In this document: positions 1-33,513 of the stretch, in pieces
How positions within the stretch are numbered: the first letter of the stretch is position 1
How the letters are laid out: every line of letters starts with the position of its first letter
Assembly (NCBI GenBank): GCA_021613535.1
Contig: CP075497.1
Span: 11,036,001 to 11,100,000 of the forward strand
Length of the DNA stretch: 64,000 nt
Reading direction: 5' to 3'
DNA from: Adineta vaga
Lineage: Eukaryota; Animalia; Rotifera
Notes under the pieces: model-generated
Told to the model about the DNA's origin: nothing
The model's database searches: none
Seen by the model: only the letters and a program-made list of their open reading frames with translations
Position numbers and translations under genes: made by a program

Positions 1-1513
1 AATGTCTTTCAACATCGATTTGATAACGATGATCACCAGTTGCACGTAATAACCAAGCTGCAGCCCATGCTAATTCATCACCATAACCAGACCATGATTT
101 ATAGAAATTAGCAGCATTGGCAATTGAATCTGAATATGCACCACGATTTTCATTAGCAAAATCATATAATTGTCGAGCATGAGTCAATAGAATAGATGAA
201 TAAGCTGGATCAGCTGAACGAAAAACGATTGAAGCAGCAGCTAATGCAGCAGCTGTTTCACCTACTAATTCAGAACCAGGTTGTGTTCTAGTTACTTTCC
301 ATGCTGGACGTGCTTGTGTCCAGTCTTCTGGTCTACCCCAAGAAGCATGATCAGCATTACCATCACCAACTTGTCCATAGAATTCACGTTCGCTAACATG
401 TGCCTATTAGAAAGAGGAGAGAACAACAATATATATATATATATTTTTTTTTCTTCTCTTCATTGAAATAGGGTAGAAAAATCAATCTTTCGTTCGTCAA
501 TGATCATTTTATAATTTAATCTAGTCCCAAAATCTGTCTAAATTAACGTATTGTTTTCACGATTCATGAATTAATTTGAGAAACTAACCTTAATGAAATA
601 ATCAGTTGACCAACGAATTGCTTGACGCATTTGATTTAATTCACCCGATGCAATATAAGCATCTTCATAATCGATAGCACCCCAGGCTAATAATGTTGTA
701 AATCCTGCCATAGGAAAACCAAATTTAACGTAATCACCTGCATCAAAATATCCACCAGTTAAATCTTCTCCATTCTCACCTTTATCCATCAACATAGAAT
801 CACCTCTCCAACTGATACGATTATCTGCTGGAAGTTTACCAGCACGTTGAGCTTCATAGAATAGAAGTGATGCATGAAGAACACTTGCATAATTATATTT
901 GCCATCGACAACTGGTGTAACTACTGGTCCAGCTGTTGATGTTGTTGCTGGTGGGTCTGTTTCAAATGTTGGTGTACTTCCTGTTGGATTTATTGTACTT
1001 CCAGGAAGTGTTACACTTTGTGATCCCACATTAATAGGTTGACCATTGAATAGAACAGAAATAAGATTACTTGGTACAACACCACCATTGGCAACAAATT
1101 CAAAATTGAATGTTGTACCAGCTGATAATTGTGCATTCCAATCTTTATTTCGATAAATATAGATTCGATCGTCAACTTTTGAATCAAGATCACCAAGCCA
1201 TGCCTAGAATATAAAATAATAATTAGATGAGAGATACTTGATAAAATGAATGTTTGTCTTTTTTTCTTTATATTTACATCAATAGAAACGGGTTGATTGA
1301 ATCGAATCTCAAGTTTCCACCCATTATTGACTGAATTCGTAATTGGAATTTCTATGGCTGCTTGAAATCCACCAGTCCATTCATTGTCTATTCGTAAATT
1401 AGCTTGACTTACGCCAACTGCAAGCGTAAGCAAAACAACTGCACAACTGAACTAAAACACATATTGACGAGAATAAAATTTTCCAAAATACTCAACAAAC
1501 TTACCAATGTCAT
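1..1513 (-). CDS. Secreted endo-beta-1,4-glucanase (cellulase): signal peptide + CBM2 + Thr/Pro linker + GH9; 3' part runs off the window start
   Basis: 9-nt first exon (ATG ACA TTG|gtaa, 1513-1505) splices to give MTLFSCAVVLLTLAVGVSQA, then CBM2-like EWTGGFQAAIEI...GWKLEIRF. GH9 motifs SLLFYEAQRAGKLP and DLTGGYFDAGDYVKFGFPMA follow, and the exon at <=404 encodes PGSELVGETAAALAAAS and YGDELAWAAAWL. Confidence 0.93.
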
Positions 1514-1851
1514 TTGTATATCAATAACAGTGCCATTAATAATCGTTCGTATATATACGTATCATTCTTAATCTTCAGTGATTATTTTTCTCTTCAATAC
1601 AAAACATATCAATTTACACCGTGATTTGTTCCAGTGCAAGTATTATATAATTAATATTCTTCGTGACTTTTATACACCTGTGGCATCTTTATTTCGTTGA
1701 TTCTTTTTTTGAGAAGAATAATAAAACTGTAAATAGATTTCTTTTGATCGAATAGAAAACAAAGAAATATATAGAAGCATTTGTAAGAATTTCTTATTTA
1801 TTTCAAATACAAAAACAATACGAACAAGAACAAGGACATTCGTATAGAAAT

Positions 1852-2972
1852 ATGATGAAAAACGAACGTCGAGAATTTTGTTTATCACCTATATCCGTAG
1901 CAAAATCAAATCATGCAGTGAACAAAAGTTCTCGTATGATTCATTATGAAGTAAGAAAGAAAATAGATATTAAATATGATAAAGATTTTGGTTTATTTAT
2001 GTAATAGCGACCAGCAACGGCAGTGGCACCGGAGAGGCAAAGTGACACAGAAGAATATCGACGTCTTCTATTAGAAAATGATATGACTGATGCACATCAG
2101 AAAGGTTTAAGAGTATGTCGCTTATGGCAATTACTATTAATTCTTAATGTTACAATTATTTTCATAACATTTACTCTTATATTCTTACTTCTATTCATCA
2201 TTGGACCTCTGTGTAAATAGATTTGAATTGAAAAAAACGCACTGCTATATCTATTCTTTAGTTCCATATCAAACACATGGTCAATCATGTCGTACATCCC
2301 CATGTAATCTTGGACAAGGACTTGTTTGTAATACAAAATCTATCTGTGCATGTCCATCATCAAATTCTTATTGGTCACATAATGAAACTGGTTGTCGTAC
2401 GTAAACTATTTCAGTCTAAAATTCAACAAAAATATATCATATTTGCTTAGGAATTTGTCCGAATGGATGGTCTTTCATAAATGGGAAATGTATATTTATT
2501 TCTACGTTTTATTTAAATTGGACGGATGCATTTACTTATTGTAAATCATTTACAGCACAATTACTAACCTTATCACCAGTCGAACTCTATCCAAGTTTAA
2601 CATTATCACAAATAAGTAGTTTAGTTTCATCGAATACGAATTATTTTATTGGATTATCTGAACAACCTGGTGATTTGTTTGTTCTTGTTTTTCATGTTTT
2701 TTCAATGCTTTTCTTTATCGTAGGTAATTGGCAATGGGTTGATGGAAGTTTATTACTTTCATCATCAATGAATTTATTTTGTACAAATGGTTCGATCAAT
2801 CAATTTGATAATTTCTTTCGTACTTATATGAATTGTGGAATCTATCGAATGGATTCATGTTTAGCTCGTACGACATGTCAACGAGTTGATATGAATTTTA
2901 TTTGTGAAAAAAGTAAATGAAATTACTATTGAATAATATCTTCTTTCTTATTCGAATTTATTTTTAGTTTAA
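1852..2972 (+). CDS. Type II membrane C-type lectin (cytoplasmic tail, TM, Cys-rich module, CTLD), paralog 1
   Basis: Spliced exons: MMKNERREF...IHYE; TM LWQLLLILNVTIIFITFTLIFLLLFII; Cys-rich PYQTHGQSC...CACP; CTLD CPNGWSFINGKC...WTDAFTYC...WQWVDGS...FICEK. Confidence 0.8.
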
Positions 2973-3054
2973 TCAATACTTTGTTTGATTTTGAAATTAT
3001 TAAAATAGCATAAAAGAAACTATATGCATCTTGTAAGTAATTGTGTTTTTTTAG

Positions 3055-4204
3055 ATGAGTTCTGAAACAGCAGATTTAGCAGCATTTCTTCAAGATGATA
3101 AAAAAACTAATCTTATCGTGTATGAAGTAAGCTACTTGATTGAATGAATGAATCAAAAGTTTGCATGATCTGTCTAAATAGCTAGAATTTAATGAATCTG
3201 ATAATCCAAACGATAAACTTCGTGCTTATGCAAAAACTCAAGGACAACGTCCATGTCGATTATGGTTGATTCTATTTTTAGTCAATTTAGCTATTCTTAC
3301 GGTCTTTATATTCTTAATACTACTACTTTTAGTTGAAGTTGGAGCCGTGCGTAAGTAAATGAAGAAAAAAAAGAGGATTTCATCACATCCGAACAAATTG
3401 TTTTCTATTCAACAATAAAAACTAAATTGTCACGAAGAAATTACTTTGATTGCATTGTAGCTCCATACCAAACTTATGGAAAACGATGTATAGTTGGTAA
3501 ATGTGATACTAAACAAGGATTAATCTGTACAGATGATAGTAATCATTTAAAAACATGTCGATGTCCACCAGGTAATTGGTTTTGGTCCAATGGTGTTAAA
3601 TGTCGTATGTAATTCATAAGAGAATAGAAAATATTAACATTTATCGTTTTAATCAGGTGAATGTCCACCGAATTGGATTATTAGTAACGAAGGTACCAGT
3701 TGTTATTTCGTTTCACATACGAATTTAAATTTTACTGATGCCAATCTTTGGTGTATGAAAAGTCAAAGTCATCTTATTGAAATTTCTAATGAAAATATCT
3801 TTATAAGTTTACAAGAAATTAGTACACTGAAATTTAGTTTAACGAATTTATATTGGATTGGTTTACGTGAAATTGGTCCGAATAAAAGTTTGTTCGTTTT
3901 CAGCATATTTCAATAGAAAAAAATTGAAGATTTTATTGTTTATAGATATCTATCGTTGGGTTGCATCGCAATCAATGTTTTCCAGTTCGAATTATTTTTG
4001 TTCAGGTCAACCAGCACATACATATAATTATTATTTTCAACAATATGATCAATGTATTGCTTTATATATTCAATCAAATACTTCCTCATGTCTACATGAT
4101 TCAACCTGTCCAAATGCATTACCATTTATTTGTGAATTGTGTAAGAACTTGGAAGAAAATGTTCCTTTCAATTATCTACATTTTCCTCTTTTTCTTTAGA
4201 TTAA
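3055..4204 (+). CDS. Type II membrane C-type lectin, paralog 2 (tandem duplicate)
   Basis: Same exon layout as 1852-2972: MSSETADLAAF...VYE; TM CRLWLILFLVNLAIL; PYQTYGKRC...CRCP; CPPNWII...FTDANLWC...YWIGL...LPFICEL. Confidence 0.8.
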
Positions 4205-11145: not shown

Positions 11146-11987
11146 TTATCGTCTAAGCCATAAGACCAAGACAACAGCTACTGCGATTCCAACAGCTAGA
11201 AGTCCAATAACAAAACCAAGTAAACCCAATTTACAGCGAGGTGAACAACGTTCAGTGAGGAAACTTGATGATTTATCCGCACTAAAGATAATCAATTAAT
11301 CGATTTTATTGAAACAATTCTTGTCCTACCTCTTTATCATTTTAACGTCGGATGACGTGGTGCTGATTGTAGTATTCGCAGTTTTATTAAATGAATTATT
11401 GGGTGTCCATGGTTCACTAGGTTTACCAAACATATTATTGGATGACGTTCGTTCGATGATTTTCGTATGTGTTGTATTTGATGAGAAGCGATCGTTTGAT
11501 TTCGTATCATTGCGATTTGAGTTTGAAGATGACATCGGTATCCATTGATCAGGTGGTTTGCTGTAGTTTTGACTGCCTCTATATTGATTATTGGATGTTG
11601 TATATACAGTATTTGCTGTTGATGGTGGTGGTGGTGAATCTACCGATTTCACAGCATATGGACTGTTTTCTAATTGTGATGGTGACCATTGATCATTGGA
11701 TTTGGAATATAGATTATTTACTGAAGAACGCTCATAACCACGTGCTGATGAATTATTGAAAGAATCCATGTATGATTGTCCAGTGAATGGTGGCGGTGAA
11801 TTTGGCAAATTGGATTGTGGCATCATGCGATCGAGCGGTGGTGAACCATTCGATTCTGCTAAACTGTCAAAAAATCCTTGTGGTAGTTGTAATGGATCTT
11901 TAACTGCGCCATATGGTTGATTGGATGCCTTTCAATTAAGACATAGAAAATAGATAAATATAATGAATTGAATAGTAATCTTACCAT
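11146..11987 (-). CDS. Ser/Asn/Pro-rich disordered protein with C-terminal TM (tail-anchored-like), unknown function
   Basis: ATG-only first exon (11987-11985|gtaag), long low-complexity exon including ORF 11326-11826, and a last exon ending LGLLGFVIGLLAVGIAVAVVLVLWLRR*. Confidence 0.7.
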
Positions 11988-22525: not shown

Positions 22526-23455
22526 ATGCTAAATATTACAAAGGATTTGACGATAATTCAGACGGAAGTATGGTTTCTTCCATTCGATATTATTATGATT
22601 ATATGTACGTCTTTATCGATTATAGCTGGTCTTCTTTTCTTATTTCTCGCAGTTACAGATCGAACAGGTTGGTCAGTTCAAATGCTTTTAGTTTGTAATT
22701 CATGTTTAGCTGAAATATTTTTAAGTTGCGTATTATTGAGTATGGCAATTTTTACAATACAACAAGATTTAAAGCAAAATACACCTAATATTTCATTCTG
22801 TCGGAGTATAGGTTTTTTAGGCTACGTTTTTGATAGTCTTCAAAATTATTCATATTTTTTAACAGCCATTTATCGCTATATAAGTGTTGTCTATCCAACA
22901 CGAATCGCATGGCAATCAAAAAAATCTCAAATTATTCTTCTTATTATCCAATGGGTGTTTTGTGCCGTTTATGCTTTACCATTATTACTAACTGAACAAA
23001 TAACTTACAATATAGACAATCAAATATGTCAAATTCCTCTTCATTTATCTGTTCCGATAATCTATGTTTCAATAGTGCTTTACTTCATTCCAAATGTTGG
23101 TATTTTTAGTATTTATATTAAACTAACTCGATATGTTCATCAAATGAGTCATCGTACGACAACAACTAATACTTTATTTCATGCACGACGAGAATTAAGA
23201 CTTGTTCAACGTACATTTATTCTTACCAATACTTTGATTATTCTTGGTATTCCGTATGCAATTTTCATTTTTATTTCCTTCTTTACAATACCACCAAAAT
23301 ATCATTTTCGTATTGCATATTTCTTTGCAGATATATCTGTCTTAGCAATTATGATAATATTATACTGTTTTACATCGCAAATTAAAACAAATATTCAACA
23401 GAAATTTAGAACAAGAAATGCAGTTGAGCCTATAGGACAAACAGCTAGAACATAA
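22526..23455 (+). CDS. Intronless rhodopsin-like orphan GPCR
   Basis: 309 aa with seven hydrophobic segments; AIYRYISVVYP (DRY-like), CQIP in ECL2, ILGIPY in TM6. Confidence 0.85.
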   Translation: MLNITKDLTIIQTEVWFLPFDIIMIICTSLSIIAGLLFLFLAVTDRTGWSVQMLLVCNSCLAEIFLSCVLLSMAIFTIQQDLKQNTPNISFCRSIGFLGYVFDSLQNYSYFLTAIYRYISVVYPTRIAWQSKKSQIILLIIQWVFCAVYALPLLLTEQITYNIDNQICQIPLHLSVPIIYVSIVLYFIPNVGIFSIYIKLTRYVHQMSHRTTTTNTLFHARRELRLVQRTFILTNTLIILGIPYAIFIFISFFTIPPKYHFRIAYFFADISVLAIMIILYCFTSQIKTNIQQKFRTRNAVEPIGQTART

Positions 23456-24160: not shown

Positions 24161-27100
24161 TTATTCAACAATGCCTTGTTTAACACGTTCAAGTCGTTGA
24201 CGAAGTAATTCCCGTGTACGTTGGGCTGAAGCATCCACTGGTGTTGATAGAGAAGGAGATGGATCAACTGAAGGTTCAGTTGTTTTATTTGATCGTAATG
24301 CTGCTAATCGAGCATTGACACCAGTTGTATTATTAGCAGTTGTTCCACCATTATTTAAACGAGATTCAAGCTAAATTAATTATAAAAATAAAAGTTTATT
24401 AAAGAATTAAAACTAAATAACATACTTCAACATCAAATGCATCCTAAAAAGAGAATTCGATGAGACAAAAGAAAATAATGACAAAACAAAACAAACTTGT
24501 CCTGTTGTAATTGGAGTTGCAGCAAGACCACATTGTTGACGCATTTGTGTTAGATGTTGTGAATAAACTTGAGGATCAATTGGTGTTGATGATGTTGCAA
24601 ATGTATTACCAAGTTGATCACGAAATTTTTCTTTAATTGCATTCATACGTTTATTATAAATTGCAACGAAATCATCATCTGAAACAGGTTTTTGTTGTTC
24701 AATATTTCCTGATGTTGGTAACGTATCAATCCAAACAAATTGTTCTTTTAATGCACGTAATTTGTCTTCGTGAATTTGTGCATATCTAAAACAAATGTAA
24801 AACTTAGATTTTCAAGTTAAATTGACAAATGATCTTACTGAGAGTAGAATGAACTGGGTGCACCTTGATTTGGCATTGATGTTATTGTTTGTGTTTTATC
24901 TCGAAGAATAGTTGATGATGGTGATGATAAATTTGATGTTGTCGATGTTGCTGTAGCAGTACGTTGATTGTGTACTCGTGCTAAACCTTCATGAATGAAT
25001 TTTTGAAAAGCATCTGCTGTTGTTGCTAAGAATGGATTAATATCCACATTTGGAAAGCGTAATTTGAAATCATATAATTCTTCTAGACCAACTTTAACTT
25101 GATCTCGACGAGCAAATTTTTGAAAAATTGTTTTTAACATTGTTTGATGTTGTTGAGTAACTTGTTCATTATTTATTCCCGATGTTGAAACTGTAAGAGC
25201 TTTTAATTTACGATGAACATAATGGCGCATTTCATCGGAAATTGGTTGTTGATCAGCTGGTATACGTGATAGATCATCAAGAATTGAACGTTGACGTTCG
25301 TCGACTAATTGTTGAAGATAGGTTTTGATTATTCGAAGTGGAAAATCATTTGTTGGAGATGCTTGCCAACGACGTGATGGAAGTTGTTTGAGAAACGATG
25401 ATATTTCAATTAAAATTTGTGTAGCATCGATTTCAGATGGATTATTTTTAAGTGATAATGGAAACATTCGAACCAAACGATAATGACACTACAGAAAGAG
25501 AAGAAAAAATAAGTAGATTTGTGAAATATATAATTTACTTTTAGAACAAGTTTAACAAATGGATCATTAATCGAAAAATCATTTTGAAGACAACATTCAG
25601 TTAAAAGACGAATTAAGGCTGTTAAAACATTGGTCATATGTGCATGTTGTAAAATTTTTAATACAATTACATTAACAATCCGAATAAAATCTTCGTTCGA
25701 TGATGCATCAACTCTTGGTGCTGTATGATGATGATTTGTATTCGTTGAAGGTGTTATTGTTACAACAACGAATGGTAAAAGTACATTGAGTAATTCTTTC
25801 AAAGTATCACGTGTAGCAATTTTAGCGAGATGTGAACGTGAAAAAAGATCAAGTAAAACTGATAGAATGCCACGAAATAAACGTTCAACACTATCACTTG
25901 GTAATGATGAATCATACAAATGATTTTGTTGAGCAATACGTAATTTCATCGAAAGCATACGAAGAAGTTTATCAACATGTTGTTCAAGATAGATACATTT
26001 TGCTGCATCATTAAGGACTTCATCGATTTGTGCTAAAGATGATAAACTATTATTCACTTCATGATCAGCAATAAGTGCAATAACAAGATCAATAGATTGA
26101 CGACAATCAGATGAAGCAGCTAAATATGAAACTGGAATTGATGTAGTAGGTACACTAAATAGATATATGTCAAATTATTCTTTCGAATATTCAAATAAAA
26201 AACAACATACGTTCGTGGTGGTAGATCTGGAAGCTCATAATCATTAGGTAATTCACTTGAAAGTAAATCAGGTAAACGAAGTGCATCCATATGATCATCA
26301 TTGAGTGCCAATTGAAATTGTCCTGGTTTCTTTTCAGTTTTTGATTGCATACGTTGTGCAGCAGCAAGACGTTGTTGATCATCTTCATCTTGCATTGTTG
26401 ATGCTAAATCTGAATCTGTTTCCATTGCTTGTTTTGGTGGTGATGGTGCTGTAGCTGGTCGACCTTTTCCTGGAACGGGTCGACCACCTTTGACTGTTGT
26501 TGCAGCAGCACTACCTGGAGGTGTTTTACCGGTTGCAGCTACATTAGCCTAGAAGAAAATACATCAATAAGGGATGATTGTAAAATAACTTTACGCTTGT
26601 AGATGAAAAACAAGACATACCTTTCCTTTCGCATCTTTTTTCTTATCATCTGTTGTTTCAGCAGCTGCACCAGCTTTGGCACCTACAGCTGGTTTCTTCT
26701 TATTAACAACTGCAGCTCCTTTTGGTGGTGACGATGGTAGTACGTCTTCTTCATCATCATCTCTGTCAGGGATTACAACCTCAGGTTTGACAACAACAAC
26801 AGCACCGCCACCTTTAATAGTTTTTACCACTGTTGGTGCTGGTGGAGGCGGAGCAGCTGAGGGTGGTGGACGAGGTTCACCACGAGAATTGAGTAGAACT
26901 GCTTTTTCTGCATATTCTTTGATCTAAATCAAACGCTATTTAGAACACTTTTTATCTCTTCTGAATTAATTATTACTTTGCTCAGTTTAAGATCATCTAA
27001 ATCCGTTATATTTGGAAGAATATGCTTTTCACCAAGACATTTCCATAACATTCCAAGACTTTCAAATGCACTATCACGTACACTTGGATCTGCATCACCC

Positions 27101-30100
27101 GTATTCTGCAATTACAAATCAACAGATATTCAACATCAGTCACTATTTCGTTCCGATCATCGCTTACCTTAATCAAAGGTGGTAGATACAATTTGAGAAC
27201 TTTTTTAGGTAAAGTTGTTTGTGTCGCCATAGCAAAACATTTGGTGAGAAATTGTTCAGTAGACTGTCGAACAATCGGAGTTTTATGAGCTAATGCTGCA
27301 ACTGCAGTTTCAGCCATTTGTTCGAGATTAGTCTACAAATAAATATATTCAATACATTTTGTTCAATATGAAACAAAAAACATACTCCAGGATAAGCTGC
27401 TTCACATGTTTCACGCAATACTTCAATAACATTGGTTTTCTTTTCTCGAAATCGATCAAAGCATACTTCAAGTACCTAAATAAAAATAGTGAAATAGTTT
27501 CTTTTAGTAAATTTAGCACGATGATATTTACTCCAACAGCATGATTTTTAAATGCTTTTCGTAAACCTTTAGCTAATCCTGTTAAACATTTGGCTGTTAC
27601 AAGAACTACAGGTACATTACTATCTTTTGAAATGATCTAAAAGAAAATGAATCCAATCAGAAATAGAGCAGAAGAAACATAAAGATATTCATCCAAACCT
27701 TGGATAATGCTTTGATCAATTCAAAATAATCACCATCTGTTGCTAATTTTGGATTCTGAGTTAATAAGGTTAATAAATCATCTAAAACTTCTTTTCGATC
27801 TTTCCATTGTTTTGATTCCTATGTAAAAAATAATCAATAGTTTTTAGCGAATAAAGAATGGATCTATTGACACTTACAATTTTTTCAAAGAAATCCTTTG
27901 GTAATCGTTCAAGAATGTTTGCAGCTTCTAACATTTCAAGTGGATCAAGTTCTTCTTGTGCTAAATATATAAAATGAAATTGAATAGAATTGATGATTTC
28001 TGTTAAAAATATACCTTCCGCTTCAACTTCATCAACAGCAACTGATGCAGCTGCACCGCCACTACTTGCACTTGCTTGTCCTTGTTTTTGTTTAGAACTT
28101 TGCTGTGAACGAAGAAAACGAGTTTGTCGTGGTTTATCAGCACCAGTTAGATCTAATTTATCAAACTCAGTTTGTAATTCTTGCATCTACAACAATACAT
28201 CATTCGACATTCCTATGGATCATTTTATGATAATCATACCTGAATAGGTTTAACATTTTGTATCATTGGCATCAGAGTTTGTTTACCGATCCATTTATAG
28301 ATTTCCACAAGTAATAATTTGGCTTCATCACGAACAGTCTTATCTCGATCTTCAAGTAGTGGAACGACTTTAGGAAGGAATGGTTTAATTGGAAGAACTT
28401 TGGAGCCGAATTCTCTGGAAGAACAAAATCGACGATTATGAAATAAATGTAAAGAACATGAGAACGTACGATAATCCTTTTCGAAGAAGTTCAAGACAAG
28501 CTTGAACAATCTTTGGTTGTTTATTTTCCAATCCTTTAACTAATTCGTCTTCAATTTCAGTATTTTTATCAATTTCAATATACATAAGAAGAATATCGAA
28601 TGCACGTTCTTTAATTTTTGCTCTGCCACTAAGACATTTACTAACTAATATTGGAACAATTTCACCAACAGTTCTATTTTATAAAAGAAAAGATAGATGT
28701 CTTTTAAACAAATCTAATCTCTTGAGATACTTACGTTCGTGCAACATAAGCTTCTTGAATGAATATAACTAATGCTTCAAGACCTTTTTCTTTCGCATTT
28801 TCATTAGCATCTAATGCAAATCGTGGTAAAAGATCTAAATAATCTTCAAATTCGCCACTTTTGCTTGAATCTTGTGTCGCAAAAACTTTGCCACATTCTT
28901 CGTAGCCAGCCAAACGTGCATTCCATAACTGGATAAATGAAAATGAATGAATAGAATCGATTGGCATTCTTTTACTTACTTTGTGTTGTACTTTTTCGTC
29001 ACATGGCAATTTCTGCCATTCGGGATCATCAATAGGTTTTTCACTACGAGCCTAAGAAGAACAAAAAAAACGTTCTTAGTGAATAAATTCATTGAAATTC
29101 ATATCTGATAAGCAGAACACTATTGCGTAATTTCTCATAGGAAGCTATAATAATGAAAGATCAAAACAGAAACAGATGCGTGGATACCCAGGAGAAAAAA
29201 AAGAAATCAATTATAATAGAATAATAAATAAAATGAAAGAACAAAGAGAGAGAAAAACAAAGTGTAACAAATGATTAAACAGTCGTTGTATTCGTTAAAA
29301 GAGGAGTAAAATACAAATGTCAAGGCACGATTAAGGAAGAAAAAGAATAAGAAACAAGAAATTTTATCACATAATTTGAATATAAAATTTGCTATGCCGA
29401 TGATTTTTTAATAATTAATGTTGGAATTGATCGCATAGGAATACGACTTTTTGTACTTAGAGTTCCATGAATAGAAGAAGAAATGAGATTGCTTGATGTT
29501 GGACGAGAAATTGAAGGTGGTAATGCTGATGATGGAATTGATCCTTGTGTATTTGTACTACTTATAGATGATGTTGAACCTCCGTTTGACGTTGATTGAC
29601 GTTGGAAATTTAAGGATGGTGAACTCGAGGGTGTGAGCGATGAACGTCGGGCATTGGCTGTTACTGATAGAGTAGATGGTATTGGTTGGGTTGTAAGTAA
29701 AGCATTTGGACGTTGTGTACGGATTTGATTATTGTTTGATATCGATTTTGTTGATGATAATGGAGCAGTTATTGGTCGAACTTTTGATGAATCAAGTTTT
29801 TCATTTGCTGTGGATAAACTTGTAAGAGATGGTTTGGTACGAGAAGAAATCATACGAGATACTGTACCAGTGATCGGAATAGACGCCTGCAATAGCACAC
29901 AAACATATACACGAATGAAAAAAAAAAACGATACTAAAAGGTATATGTATATGTTTGTATGTCTTCATTGAACGAACAAAGAAGAGAACGCACACACAAA
30001 GTAAAATCAAAGAAATAAGGAATGTTCGAAGAGTAAATGTAAAATTAATTAGAGGCAAATTTACCTTTTGAGGTCGTGATTCTCTTTTCTTCTCTTCTAT

Positions 30101-32508
30101 TGGTTCACTAGTTGTTGCTGCTGGTTTAGCTGTTGTCGCTGGTTTTTTCTTTGTGGCAACAGCTGCTGGTTTAGCTGTCGTTGATGGACTTGCTGTTTCC
30201 TCATCTCTATCAGCAGCGATATCTGATTTCGATACTGTTGAACTCGATGGTTTCTTTGTCATTGTTGCTGAATTAATAGATGATGCCGTCGATTTTGGCA
30301 CTGCTGCTGCTACAGAAGCTGTTGAACGAGGTTCTCCACGAGAATTGAGTAGAACTGCTTTTTCTGCATATTCTTTGATCTAAATCAAACGCTATTTAGA
30401 ACACTTTTTATCTCTTCGAATCAATTATTACTTTGCTCAGTTTAAGATCATCTAAATCCGTTATATTTGGAAGAATATGTTTTTCACCAAGACATTTCCA
30501 TAACATTCCAAGACTTTCAAATGCACTATCACGTACACTTGGATCTGCATCACCCGTATTCTGCAATTACAAATCAACAGATATTCAACATCAGTCACTA
30601 TTTCGTTCCGATCATCGCTTACCTTAATCAAAGGTGGTAGATACAATTTGAGAACTTTTTTAGGTAAAGTTGTTTGTGTCGCCATAGCAAAACATTTGGT
30701 GAGAAATTGTTCAGTAGATTGTCGAACAATCGGAGTTTTATGAGCTAATACAGTAGTTGCTACTTCCGATAGTTGTTCAAGATTTGTCTAAATGAAAAAC
30801 GAATTCGTGTTTTTTATTGAAAATAGCTTGCTGAAAATAGTCACCGATGGATATGCAGCATCACATGTTTCACGCAATACTTCAATAACATTGGTTTTCT
30901 TTTCTCGAAACCGATCAAGACATACTTCAAGTACCTAAATAATTATATCGAACAAATAAATATTATTTTCAACATTGAAGAAATACTTACTCCAACAGCA
31001 TGATTTTTAAATGCTTTTCGTAAACCTTTAGCTAATCCTGTTAAACATTTAGCAGCAACAAGGACTACAGGTACATTACTATCTTTGGCAATAATCTATC
31101 CAACAAGAAAATGCATTCAATTATGATAAATCTTCATTTTTTGCATACTTTTTTCAACGCTTTGATCAATTCAAAATAATCACCATCTGCTGCTAGTTTT
31201 GGATTCTGAGTTAATAAGGTTAATAAATCATCCAAAACTTCTTTTCGATCTTTCCATTGTTTCGATTCCTAGAACATTTGTATGTATTCACTAATCAATC
31301 TTGTTTTTTGAGAACTTCATCTTACAATTTTATCGAAGAAATCTTTTGGTAATCGATCAAGAATATTGACAGGTTCCATCATTTCAAATGGATCAAGTTC
31401 TTCTTGCACTAAAATATCAAGAAGACAGTCGACATAGTTCTATATTTATAATTACAAATATATACTTTCAACATTGACATCTTCAACAGCAACCGATGAA
31501 CTAACTGTTGTGGATGCTTGAGTTTGTTCCATTTTTTGTTTAAGATCTTGTTGTGAACGAAGAAAACGAGTTTGTCGTGGTTTATCAGCACCAGTTAGAT
31601 CTAATTTATCAAACTCAGTTTGTAATTCTTGCATCTACAACAATACATCATTTGACATTCCTATGGATCATTTTATGATAATCATACCTGAATAGGTTTG
31701 ACATTTTGTATCATTGGCATCAGAGTTTGTTTGCCGATCCATTTATAGACTTCTACAAGTAATAATTTGGCTTCATCACGAACAGTCTTATCTCGATCTT
31801 CAAGTAGTGGAACAACTTGTTTCAGGAAAGGTTTGATTGGAAGAACTTTGGAACCGAATTCTCTGCAAAAATAAATTCAATAATTATAAGATGCATACGA
31901 AGAATATAGAGGCATACGATAATCCTTTTCGAAGAAGTTCAAGACAAGCTTGAACAATTTTTGGTTGTTTATTTTCCAATCCTTTAACTAATTCTTCTTC
32001 AATATCGACTTGTTTTTCGATTTCAACATACATAAGCAGAATATCGAATGCTCGTTCTTTCATTTTTGTACGTCCATTTAAACATTTACCGATTATTCCT
32101 GGTGCTACTTCACCAACAGTTCTAAATAAAATGCAAATGTGATAATTTACTTCTACAGGAAAAGGAAGAAGAAATTACTTACTTTCCTGCTACTTGTGCT
32201 TCTTCCACAAAGGCAAATACAGCATCCAGTGCTTTTTCTCGAGCATTCTCATTTGTATCAATAACAAATTTTTTTATAAGTCCAAGATATTTACTAAATT
32301 CAGGACTTTTATCTGAATCTTGTGTACGAAATAATTTGACACATTCTTCATATCCAGTTACACGAGCTTTCCATGCCTAAATATCCAGTAAAAAATAAAC
32401 AATGTTAAGTTGTCACTCATTGAATAGTTTAAGTACTTTATGCTGCACTTTTTCATCGCATGGCAATTTTTGCCATTCGTTGTCATCACCACCACCGCTA
32501 GTTGCCAT
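24161..32508 (-). CDS. CKAP5: XMAP215/ch-TOG/Msps microtubule polymerase, long isoform TOG1-TOG2-TOG1'-TOG2'-C-terminal domain
   Basis: [75 protein letters not shown]; C-terminal helical domain (GLEELYDFK..P.VDINPFL...FQKFIHEGL) ending LRQRLERVKQGIVE*. Confidence 0.93.
26870..32490 (-). repeat. Intragenic direct duplication of the TOG1-TOG2 unit (~26870-29051 vs ~30326-32490, offset ~3.45 kb)
   Basis: Near-identical blocks 26870-27294 vs 30326-30749 and 28104-28415 vs 31552-31865, including introns; intron positions are shared throughout. Confidence 0.95.
29392..29886 (-). CDS. CKAP5: Alternative terminal exon of XMAP215: Ser/Thr/Arg-rich tail with SxIP motif
   Basis: Phase-0 acceptor (ttgcag|GCG TCT ATT CCG) matches the phase-0 donor at 30065 (CAA AAG|gtaa). 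Open ~164 codons ending TKSRIPMRSIPTLIIKKSSA*. Confidence 0.7.
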   Translation of the reverse strand, partial: ASIPITGTVSRMISSRTKPSLTSLSTANEKLDSSKVRPITAPLSSTKSISNNNQIRTQRPNALLTTQPIPSTLSVTANARRSSLTPSSSPSLNFQRQSTSNGGSTSSISSTNTQGSIPSSALPPSISRPTSSNLISSSIHGTLSTKSRIPMRSIPTLIIKKSSA

Positions 32509-33513
32509 CTAGAAGAAAAACGAAATGATGTGTCTCCTTGAATTAAAATATGACATGTAAAAAAAAAGATGAGCTATCAATAGACGGTTGAATGAACAAC
32601 CTTAGATATGTAGGTAGGCAAGATGATGTCATAAGATATGCCGATTTCTCACGACATTTAAAGGACAGAAGAAAAAGAAAAACAAAATGTAAAAAAAAAG
32701 AATAACGAGACGAACGAACGAACGAATAAGATGAAGAAAGAAACGAAATTACACCGTAGTTCAATCAATAGTTTAGTTCGTTCGTGTATATGTATTGATT
32801 TGAATTGAATCATTCATTTTTGGCGAGGAATATTATTCATTATTTGACCAATCAAATTCAATATCGATGAATAATACGAAAATCCTTTCTTATCGAAAAT
32901 TGAAATTATTTCAATGAAATTAAAAACGAAACAAGACTAAGAAATATTATAAAATCGACAAATCCATCACTAATCGTGAAATCTGTTATGATAGATGTCG
33001 CTAATTCTTGTCTAATGAATATATTTATTATTCATAAAGAACTCACTTGTAATTATAGACTTCTTTTAGAATTTGTTAGTGAAATTCCGACTCTGAACCA
33101 ATTTTCTCGATGTTAATGAGAAAATTCGACACCTGTTACCAAATGTTAAAAATACATGTTACAAATAATCAATATGGAAATATTTAAATCTGTTTCTCTA
33201 TTCACAAGATTTACACACAACGACAGCATACTGAGGAAAATGTCTGATTTTTTAAAAATTTATCGGTCCTTCGATGATGTTTATTCTAGACAAGTTTCTC
33301 GAATTGACACTATTGTTTCGGGTACACAACAAGACTGTATGTGGAAGGAACCAGGAACAATCGTAATAGTCTAAGTCGATCAATGCTTATATGAACTGAT
33401 ATTCTTTAAACTTTCGATTAAGATTTCAAAAGATAAATATACAGTTATTATTTATTTTTTTTAATATACCTTTTTAAAGTCCACAAAGAATAAATAAGAA
33501 TAATATTATTATT

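Follow-up and report, generated by a model that had tools for sequence, protein, structure and literature searches.

Layout of the gene and classes of its TOG domains

The window analysed here, a 64,000-nucleotide stretch of the genome of the bdelloid rotifer Adineta vaga (contig CP075497.1, positions 11,036,001 to 11,100,000; positions below are those of the window unless another contig is named), contains a split gene of the XMAP215/ch-TOG/CKAP5 type on its minus strand at 32508-24161, in an AT-rich region (GC about 0.26-0.41). Self-comparison of the window showed a tandem repeat with a period of ~3,450 bp in the gene region, with no further copies found across the 64 kb. BlastN analysis matched 26864-28676 to 30320-32124 with 84.8% identity over 1,845 nt, with weaker matches reaching up to 29022/32479. 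Identity is uneven along the repeat, with blocks of 86-99% in the repeat search and blastn values ranging from 99% (26963-27262 versus 30418-30717) to ~73%. Using a GT-AG model with 50-62-nt introns, two units could be distinguished, A and B, with 1,821 and 1,812 nt of coding sequence, respectively, each consisting of twelve stop-free exons with the same phases and with equal lengths in ten of the twelve. The features of the gene are as follows (E, exon; primes mark unit B and the exons behind it).

32509-32510, minus strand: acceptor AG directly 5' of the unit A ATG (ttcttctag-ATG)
32508-30065, minus strand: unit A, E1-E12, encoding TOG1, TOG2 and basic linker 1 (607 codons)
32508-32437, 32376-32183, 32121-31918, 31862-31688, 31634-31466, 31408-31326, minus strand: unit A exons E1-E6
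31268-31149, 31095-30991, 30934-30845, 30787-30623, 30560-30432, 30379-30065, minus strand: unit A exons E7-E12
29052-30064, minus strand: long-form intron 12 of 1,013 nt, which encloses E13 (donor AAG-GTAAAT, acceptor ttcttag-GCT, both phase 0)
29886-29392, minus strand: E13, alternative terminal exon that ends the short isoform (stop TAG at 29394-29392)
29051-26621, minus strand: unit B, E1'-E12', encoding TOG1', TOG2' and linker 2a (604 codons, no initiator Met)
29051-28980, 28928-28735, 28673-28470, 28414-28240, 28186-28015, 27960-27878, minus strand: unit B exons E1'-E6'
27818-27699, 27636-27532, 27475-27386, 27332-27168, 27105-26977, 26923-26621, minus strand: unit B exons E7'-E12'
26211-26548, minus strand: E13', linker 2b of 112 amino acids (aa), with a basic N-terminal part (isoelectric point, pI, 10.4) followed by an acidic part (pI 4.3)
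25539-26154, minus strand: E14', predicted N-terminal two thirds of a cryptic TOG6-type helical-repeat domain
24839-25488, minus strand: E15', predicted end of TOG6 and C-terminal helical domain (four-helix bundle)
24785-24497 and 24370-24161, minus strand: E16' and E17', C-terminal tail with the stop codon at 24163-24161, placed by open reading frames (ORFs) and splice sites

The acceptor abutting the ATG is shared by all A-type units, occurring also in those of the environmental bdelloid contig L008 and of an ohnolog on contig C3 (both described below). It is probably a spliced-leader or 5' untranslated region (UTR) intron acceptor and would presumably be used as such here. The acceptor AG of E1' lies at 29053-29052 (ttcttag-GCT), with the exon beginning at 29051 in phase 0; the TAG of this acceptor is at the same time an in-frame stop codon just upstream, and E1' lacks a Met. 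Past the acceptor, no clear similarity was found between the upstream flanks of E1 and E1'. At the distal side the tails of E12 and E12' are homologous (local score z = 7.0) and homology of E13 with E13' is unsupported (z = 0.1), which places the distal duplication boundary between the end of E12 and E1'. The predicted long product of about 1,909 aa has the order TOG1-TOG2-L1-TOG1'-TOG2'-L2-TOG6-helical domain-tail, and the predicted short product of 771 aa comprises TOG1-TOG2-L1 and the E13 tail. A possible 18-nt microexon (DAFDVE; 24426-24443, minus strand) with good acceptor and donor sites lies in the 126-nt gap between E16' and E17', and would leave an intron of usual size (about 50-55 nt) on either side of it.

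A preliminary description of this locus had proposed that the region behind TOG1-TOG2 is a second copy with shared intron positions, and this is borne out by the blastn match and by the identical phases of the twelve exons per unit; the peptides it quoted for the two units are present at their starts. Its phase-0 entry at 29051 without a Met is confirmed by the acceptor AG and the TAG codon upstream, and the basic linker and C-terminal domain it placed after unit B were recovered through the linker pI and a CKAP5 domain match, given below.

Database, fold and family searches were performed with single exons or stored proteins, and the joined coding sequence was used for alignment, substitution rates, trees and local hidden Markov model (HMM) scans. 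The Pfam family PF21041 matches single exons (E2, E3) at E about 1e-17. In phmmer comparisons with homologs that have five TOGs, the scores of TOG1 and TOG1' are 205-214 bits or more against canonical TOG1 and 13-22 bits against TOG3, and those of TOG2 and TOG2' are 197-222 bits against canonical TOG2 and 10-30 bits against TOG4. A tree of 39 TOG domains likewise placed TOG1' as sister to TOG1 and TOG2' as sister to TOG2 (support 1.0 each), nested with their own class in the canonical TOG1 (0.995) and TOG2 (0.647) clades. Clustering with TOG3 or TOG4, an outcome which the preliminary description had singled out, was seen in neither the tree nor the bit scores. The bdelloid TOG1 and TOG2 are 46-51% identical to those of Xenopus, and alignment to the Xenopus protein (P0159) showed that the equivalents of W21, K102, W292 and K373 of XMAP215 are kept in all four TOGs, with Trp present in each and Lys or Arg at the basic sites. 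These we take to be tubulin-contact positions in XMAP215 numbering, W21 and W292 as the Trp of the HR-A loop and K102 and K373 as the basic residues. A W21A/K102A construct of XMAP215 is named in PMC13376574.

Class-specific HMMs run against the six frames of the 64-kb window identified TOG1- and TOG2-class frames only, which tile both profiles twice. No TOG-like frame was found with them between unit B and the C-terminal exons, and no open frame in the window had TOG5 as its best class, with the interval between TOG2' and TOG6 consisting of low-complexity linker only. The introns between E12' and E15' are 50-72 nt long and leave no room for more exons, and L008 is equally compact. Elsewhere in the genome (100.8 Mb, six contigs) TOG3-5 were not found with residues 580-1470 of a mollusc CKAP5 (P0002) or with PF21041, in searches whose sensitivity is limited by split exons. 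The search with P0002 retrieved molluscs and vertebrates only, and no rotifer models. The proposed loss of TOG3-5 thus holds in so far as none was found in gene, window or genome.

The linkers are basic, with a pI of 9.9 for linker 1, 9.0 for linker 2a (the 83 aa after TOG2') and 10.4 for the first 45 aa of E13'. E14' aligns to residues about 1515-1700 of 2,000-aa five-TOG homologs; in ch-TOG, TOG6 spans residues 1517-1802 and the C-terminal domain residues 1817-1957 (141 aa) (PMC6132821). Pfam and PDB sequence searches with E14' returned nothing significant. Its AlphaFold model is an all-helical repeat (pLDDT 82.8), for which Foldseek gave weak HEAT/TOG-like matches only. Residues 115-208 of E15' match PDB 9f4c chain A (CKAP5, 141 aa; E = 2.5e-11). 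By sequence and model, E14' and E15' are predicted to form the cryptic TOG6 followed by the C-terminal helical domain, which in ch-TOG is the TACC-binding region.

Transcripts and conservation of the two units

RNA contigs from four runs of four studies (X3, X5, X10 and X11) were placed on 26601-32600. These contigs carry splices and are thus of RNA origin, and their depth cannot rank isoforms. Introns 2-4, 6, 7, 9 and others of unit A were seen as contig joints in three to four of the studies, and each of the four runs has contigs from unit B exons, with joints at 28928/28980, 28673/28735, 28186/28240, 27960/28015 and 27332/27386. Splicing from E12' to E13' is represented in 4/4 runs by a 255-nt loose end at 26620 that matches 26518-26547.

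The end of unit A has two potential partners, as E12 ends at 30065 with the phase-0 donor AAG-GTAAAT, downstream of which phase-0 acceptors occur at 29887 (E13) and 29052 (E1'). One and the same 26-letter overhang is found at 29888 (X3, X10) and at 29053 (X10). Apart from three mismatches, in runs that are rich in allelic differences there, its reverse complement corresponds to the final 26 nt of E12, and no other source of the overhang was found in the window or at the ohnolog. The attachment of the 3' end of E12 at both positions indicates that the RNA holds both E12-E13 and E12-E1' joins, the latter running straight to 29051 and consistent with entry into unit B by splicing. The E1'-E2'-E3' contig is 451 nt long in X11, as in X10, and 495 nt long in X5; those of X11 and X5 are completely placed and extend 28 and 72 nt beyond E1', respectively, which would fit an E12-E1' junction with the reference allele. 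RNA contigs span 29282-29888, in the E13 region, and there is no coverage from 29054 to about 29281, so that no extra start exon for unit B is visible. The separate start exon considered in the preliminary description was accordingly not found, and E1' is without a Met and preceded by an in-frame TAG in four bdelloid sequences. The tail encoded by E13 is basic (pI 12), rich in Ser/Thr/Pro and 164 aa long, and includes a conserved SxIP-like motif, SRIP.

Joints that would imply splicing between units (27472-30988, 27105-30623, 26923-30432 and 31267-27877) were rejected as placement or de Bruijn artefacts, as the short side of each falls within sequence that A and B share completely or almost completely (the last 60 nt of E8, the last 96 nt of E10, and E11 at 99%). 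The RNA runs further contain two haplotypes of the exon 12 region (30065-30346), with up to nine differences in 283 nt, and the linker is far more polymorphic than the TOG exons.

Relatives were identified with an exon-12-only query of genomic ORFs, after which the loci were fetched and the window exons mapped onto them. ORF matches across E12-E1' in the protein collection are genomic ORF calls reading into introns, and are evidence of conservation, not of RNA. Degenerate patterns of the spliced junctions E12-E1' and, as a control, E1'-E2' had no match among the metagenome contigs, a collection that by its empty control contains no transcripts of the gene. The 426-kb contig L008, from an environmental assembly, carries the full order A1-A12, E13, B1-B12 and B13-B17, and the 3.4-kb contig L009 of Rotaria sp. 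Silwood2 carries A11, A12, E13 and B1-B10. This layout in two independent assemblies speaks against a mis-assembly or haplotype join, which the preliminary description had named as a possible source of the array. Orthology across species is unit-specific, with exon 2 of the first unit of L008 being 91% identical to A and 58% to B, and exon 2 of the second units of L008 and L009 being 89-92% identical to B and 60% to A. B-type exon 2' is also kept in many environmental bdelloids. L008 lacks two introns, so that B7 runs directly into B8 and B15 into B16, an independent confirmation of those modelled junctions, and both E16' and E17' are conserved there.

In the window, L008, L009 and the environmental ORF P0189 alike, E1' opens with [AV]R[SH][ED]..., lacks a Met and follows an in-frame stop codon, and the end of E13 (...KSRIP.R.IP..I.KK..stop) is kept in the window, L008, L009 and the C3 ohnolog. 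Both units are under purifying selection, with ratios of non-synonymous to synonymous substitution rates (dN/dS) of 0.06-0.11. For unit A the value is 0.076 (window versus L008), and for unit B it is 0.064 (window versus L008), 0.105 (window versus Rotaria) and 0.072 (L008 versus Rotaria), at a dS between orthologs of 0.6-1.0; E1-E3 alone give 0.065-0.119. The E1'-E3' region is conserved as protein and has neither a start codon nor, in the absence of splicing, an upstream in-frame ATG, and must therefore consist of internal coding exons. This protein conservation of the start-less E1' region is the strongest argument for a fused reading frame.

The annotation of Rotaria sp. Silwood2 (GCA_905332225.1, CAJOBN010020885.1) contains an E11-E12 fragment at 58-507 of L009 and, at 708-3407, a model of 601 aa whose start lies within E13 and which extends into unit B. 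It thus divides the locus in two, and existing gene models do not reveal the four-TOG architecture. At 17394-18539 of L008, ~1.3 kb past the XMAP215 stop, there is a second weak match (35-40% aa) to TOG6 and the following exons; the genome search returned a single match for the TOG6 exon in A. vaga and no second TOG6-like copy.

A conserved noncoding element lies between E13 and unit B.

29091-29136, minus strand: noncoding block of ~45 nt, GAGAAAT.ACGCAATA ... TTATCAGATAT.GATTT, 40-85 nt upstream of the E1' acceptor

It contains the palindromic TATC-A-GATA, occurs once in the window and has no match in Rfam. The block is almost invariant between the window, L008 (~11295-11345), L009 (~1372-1425) and C3 (~5814290-5814345), despite saturated synonymous sites in these species (dS ~0.6-1.0), and may regulate splicing or polyadenylation or belong to a promoter.

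Origin of the array and rival explanations

A third TOG1-TOG2 unit is encoded on contig C3 (5811234-5814138, plus strand; L004, L005 and L006), at 73-75% identity. This ohnolog is intact, with an acceptor-ATG start, an A-type unit, a linker, and an E13 homolog with the same stop, and its intron 12 is ~50 nt long. It lacks unit B and the C-terminal exons, as well as a counterpart of the intronless 309-aa ORF with multiple hydrophobic segments, resembling a G protein-coupled receptor, which lies directly downstream of the XMAP215 gene in the window (22526-23455, plus strand). About 0.8 kb past the C3 unit is an ortholog of the gene at window ~20700. Over E1-E3 the dN of the C3 unit is 0.123 to A versus 0.305 to B, which identifies it as A-type, and comparison with unit A gives a dN/dS of 0.13. 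The bdelloid clade of a TOG1-TOG2 tree (support 1.0) divides into an A-type clade (window A, L008 A and C3; 0.84) and a B-type clade (window B, L008 B and Rotaria B; 1.0). The A/B split with C3 on the A side places the duplication on the bdelloid stem, ahead of both the genome duplication and the species split. The C3 copy lost its distal part later, with the survival past the C3 gene of the 45-nt block that normally lies upstream of E1' favouring loss over gain.

The duplication looks young in places as a consequence of gene conversion between the units, which also accounts for the chimeric placements of RNA contigs. Introns 4, 10 and 11 are 98%, 100% and 96% identical between units, respectively, as against 57-72% for the other introns, and exon identity ranges from 64% (E1) to 99% (E11), with a difference of 34-36% in exons 1-2. 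Two tracts were delimited by intron/exon identity.

30336-30718 versus 26880-27263: gene-conversion tract
31550-31862 versus 28100-28414: gene-conversion tract

The locus is quite probably a single gene, the bdelloid ortholog of XMAP215, in which an ancient tandem duplication of TOG1-TOG2 yields a four-TOG chain without TOG3-5, alongside a short form. This explanation builds on observed anatomy, RNA-contig splice junctions, conservation, selection and TOG classes; the polymerase activity, lattice-binding mode and isoform regulation outlined here are extrapolated from the family. The phase-0 donor of E12 has two partners, the E1' acceptor giving the long form and the E13 acceptor the 771-aa two-TOG form. 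The (trans-)splice acceptor abutting the ATG was probably part of the block that was duplicated. Placed behind the phase-0 donor of E12, this acceptor would have made the copied first exon an in-frame internal exon at once, with the Met being lost later; more than half (>50%) of bdelloid transcripts carry a trans-spliced 23-nt leader (PMC1925144). Each of the four TOG1/2-class domains may bind a curved tubulin dimer, and the two basic linkers may hold the long form on the lattice in place of TOG5. TOG1 and TOG2 bind free curved tubulin, and yeast members of the family reach four TOGs by dimerising (PMC5461023). The long form might work like these dimeric four-TOG polymerases, as a monomer and without a lattice-type TOG5. 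TOG6 binds gamma-tubulin, and TOG6 and the four-helix bundle support nucleation from gamma-TuRC, the ring complex of gamma-tubulin (PMC13376574), so that the corresponding bdelloid domains may provide gamma-TuRC and TACC targeting. The short form, with its two TOGs, could serve as a polymerase or shuttle tubulin, with the SxIP-like SRIP motif recruiting it to growing ends. A joint reading, in which an essential, monomeric [TOG1-TOG2]x2 polymerase devoid of lattice-type TOG3-5 and of one-step, acceptor-borne origin has its isoforms balanced by the 45-nt element and an EB1-binding SxIP short form, is possible and is put forward tentatively. The preliminary description had interpreted the gene as a single-chain mimic of the yeast dimer that arose with the loss of TOG3-5. 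That interpretation is supported, the mimicry being a putative functional analogy, with the corrections that the duplication is ancient and not recent, that TOG6 and the C-terminal domain appear to be kept, and that there is a short isoform too.

Several points weigh against the single four-TOG gene. The 45-nt block upstream of E1' could belong to an internal promoter; the E12-E1' junction is explicit in one run only, as a 26-nt contig overhang; contigs do not yield isoform proportions, and neither a full-length cDNA nor a peptide was seen. The genome-wide absence of TOG3-5 rests on split-exon searches of limited sensitivity, no full-length protein annotated from a bdelloid was recovered, and in Rotaria the locus is annotated as two models. 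Furthermore, both lattice binding and nucleation by XMAP215 are reported to be strongly dependent on TOG5 (PMC13376574), and activity in its absence is not guaranteed. TOG1-2-5 is a minimal array in fly cells, where deletion of TOG5 slows growth rates (PMC5461023).

The locus could instead comprise two genes, with unit A and E13 producing a short protein, unit B and the C-terminus being separately promoted, and E12-E1' being a rare read-through. This would involve a promoter in the 340-bp spacer, trans-splicing at 29052 and a later or non-AUG start. E13 has its own stop and 3' UTR, the C3 ohnolog is an intact stand-alone unit A with E13, bdelloids trans-splice most of their mRNAs (PMC1925144), and a strongly conserved block lies just upstream of the E1' acceptor. 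However, this block is also kept on C3, where unit B does not follow. In every species E1' lacks an in-frame ATG and follows an in-frame TAG, and the first in-frame Met of unit B falls in exon 3', yet E1'-E3' have a dN/dS of 0.065-0.119 and E2' carries the tubulin-contact Trp. The sole sequence seen joined at 29053 in RNA is the 3' end of E12 and not a leader, and the donor and acceptor phases are compatible in three species. Two genes are therefore considered unlikely. Still less probable is that the fused transcript is minor or non-productive, with unit B decaying or serving as a mere donor for gene conversion. In its favour, the contigs give no isoform proportions. Against it, unit B is the sole route to the single-copy exons for TOG6 and the C-terminal domain, and it is intact in three species with a dN/dS of 0.064-0.105. 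Its B-type exon 2' has been retained by many environmental bdelloids and its contigs occur in 4/4 runs.

Conversion between the units is active, as seen in introns 4, 10 and 11 (96-100% versus 57-72% for the others), and could in principle have overwritten an ancestral TOG3-TOG4 with TOG1-TOG2 sequence. This is very improbable given the lengths and phases common to the twelve exons of both units, the TOG1-class score (62 bits) and lack of a TOG3 match of the least converted exons E1' and E2', and the nesting of the B-type clade within TOG1/TOG2; the similarity of canonical TOG1 and TOG3 (13-22 bits) is also far too low to start conversion. Near-identical stretches can mislead assemblers and did yield chimeric RNA-contig placements, and a collapsed or joined haplotype or ohnolog would be another source of the array. 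An artefact of this kind is hardly credible, however, as the identical order recurs in other species, in two independent assemblies; the true ohnolog, at 73-75%, maps to a different contig, and between the units the difference amounts to 15% overall, reaching 34-36% in exons 1-2.

Comparison with known systems

A full-text search of the literature library used found no paper that pairs bdelloids or Adineta with XMAP215, ch-TOG, CKAP5 or TOG domains. The duplicated TOG pair is apparently specific to bdelloids among the sequences examined, and the 1-2-1'-2' array appears to be an old, conserved and undescribed design of a well-known family. Two views of how such arrays function can be distinguished. 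In a polarised array, the TOG classes must be distinct and in a fixed order, with lattice-bound TOG5 as the foremost requirement (PMC5461023, PMC13376574), and in tethered delivery, any two or more free-tubulin-binding TOGs with a basic region suffice. An array without TOG3-5 that a whole animal class has retained under strong purifying selection since before the genome duplication represents a natural experiment separating both views. If the four-TOG explanation is true, tethered free-tubulin-binding TOGs and basic linkers would be enough in an animal, and the bdelloid gene offers ready-made constructs for in vitro assays. It is further a clean case of domain-array remodelling by exon-block duplication with concerted evolution, and may show how trans-splice acceptors ease such fusions. 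The short SxIP-tailed isoform and the short-only ohnolog suggest a split of labour between an EB-tethered and a gamma-TuRC/TACC-targeted polymerase.

With metazoan XMAP215, ch-TOG (CKAP5) and Msps, the bdelloid protein shares orthologous TOG1 and TOG2, the TOG6 region, the helical domain and basic inter-TOG linkers, and it is presumably also monomeric. It differs from them in lacking TOG3, TOG4 and TOG5, in whose place it has a second TOG1-TOG2 pair. Non-yeast members have been described as pentameric monomers, with ZYG-9 of Caenorhabditis elegans as the notable exception (PMC5461023). The latter is likewise a reduced animal array that has lost TOG3-TOG4 and kept a C-terminal TOG6-like domain (PMC5461023, PMC13376574). 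It is composed of TOG1-TOG2-TOG3, with the third TOG being TOG5-like, and has a single pair, whereas the bdelloid protein has two TOG1-TOG2 pairs and no TOG5. The proteins P0023 (encoded by an intronless gene for 1,189 aa; L010, 5752-9321) and P0040 (a transcript product of 1,290 aa), both from eukaryotes in metagenomes or transcriptomes, contain TOG1-TOG2, a linker and TOG6/C-terminal domain and no TOG3-5, an architecture that equals the bdelloid gene minus its duplication, with a single TOG pair. They were considered as representatives of the rotifer ancestor and rejected, as the tree places them in a separate clade from the bdelloid units. Their position indicates independent reduction in a lineage not related to bdelloids, the array having been reduced more than once.

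The yeast proteins Stu2, Alp14 and Dis1 also have four TOG1/2-class domains per functional molecule, and a basic Ser/Lys-rich region after each pair. Alp14 binds four tubulins through dimeric TOG1-TOG2 arrays (10.1101/340026). In the bdelloid protein the four TOGs are in one polypeptide and derive from duplication, not from coiled-coil dimerisation, and the animal-type TOG6 and C-terminal domain are kept, so that the likeness to yeast would be one of functional analogy and not of shared descent. Removed or misplaced TOG classes have also been probed with engineered Msps arrays (delta-TOG3-4, 12341 and 52345; Byrnes and Slep 2017), among which TOG1-2-5 rescues fully and 12341 partly (PMC5461023). 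A 1-2-1-2 array lacking TOG5 is not among the engineered arrays of that study, and the bdelloid protein can be regarded as its natural version.

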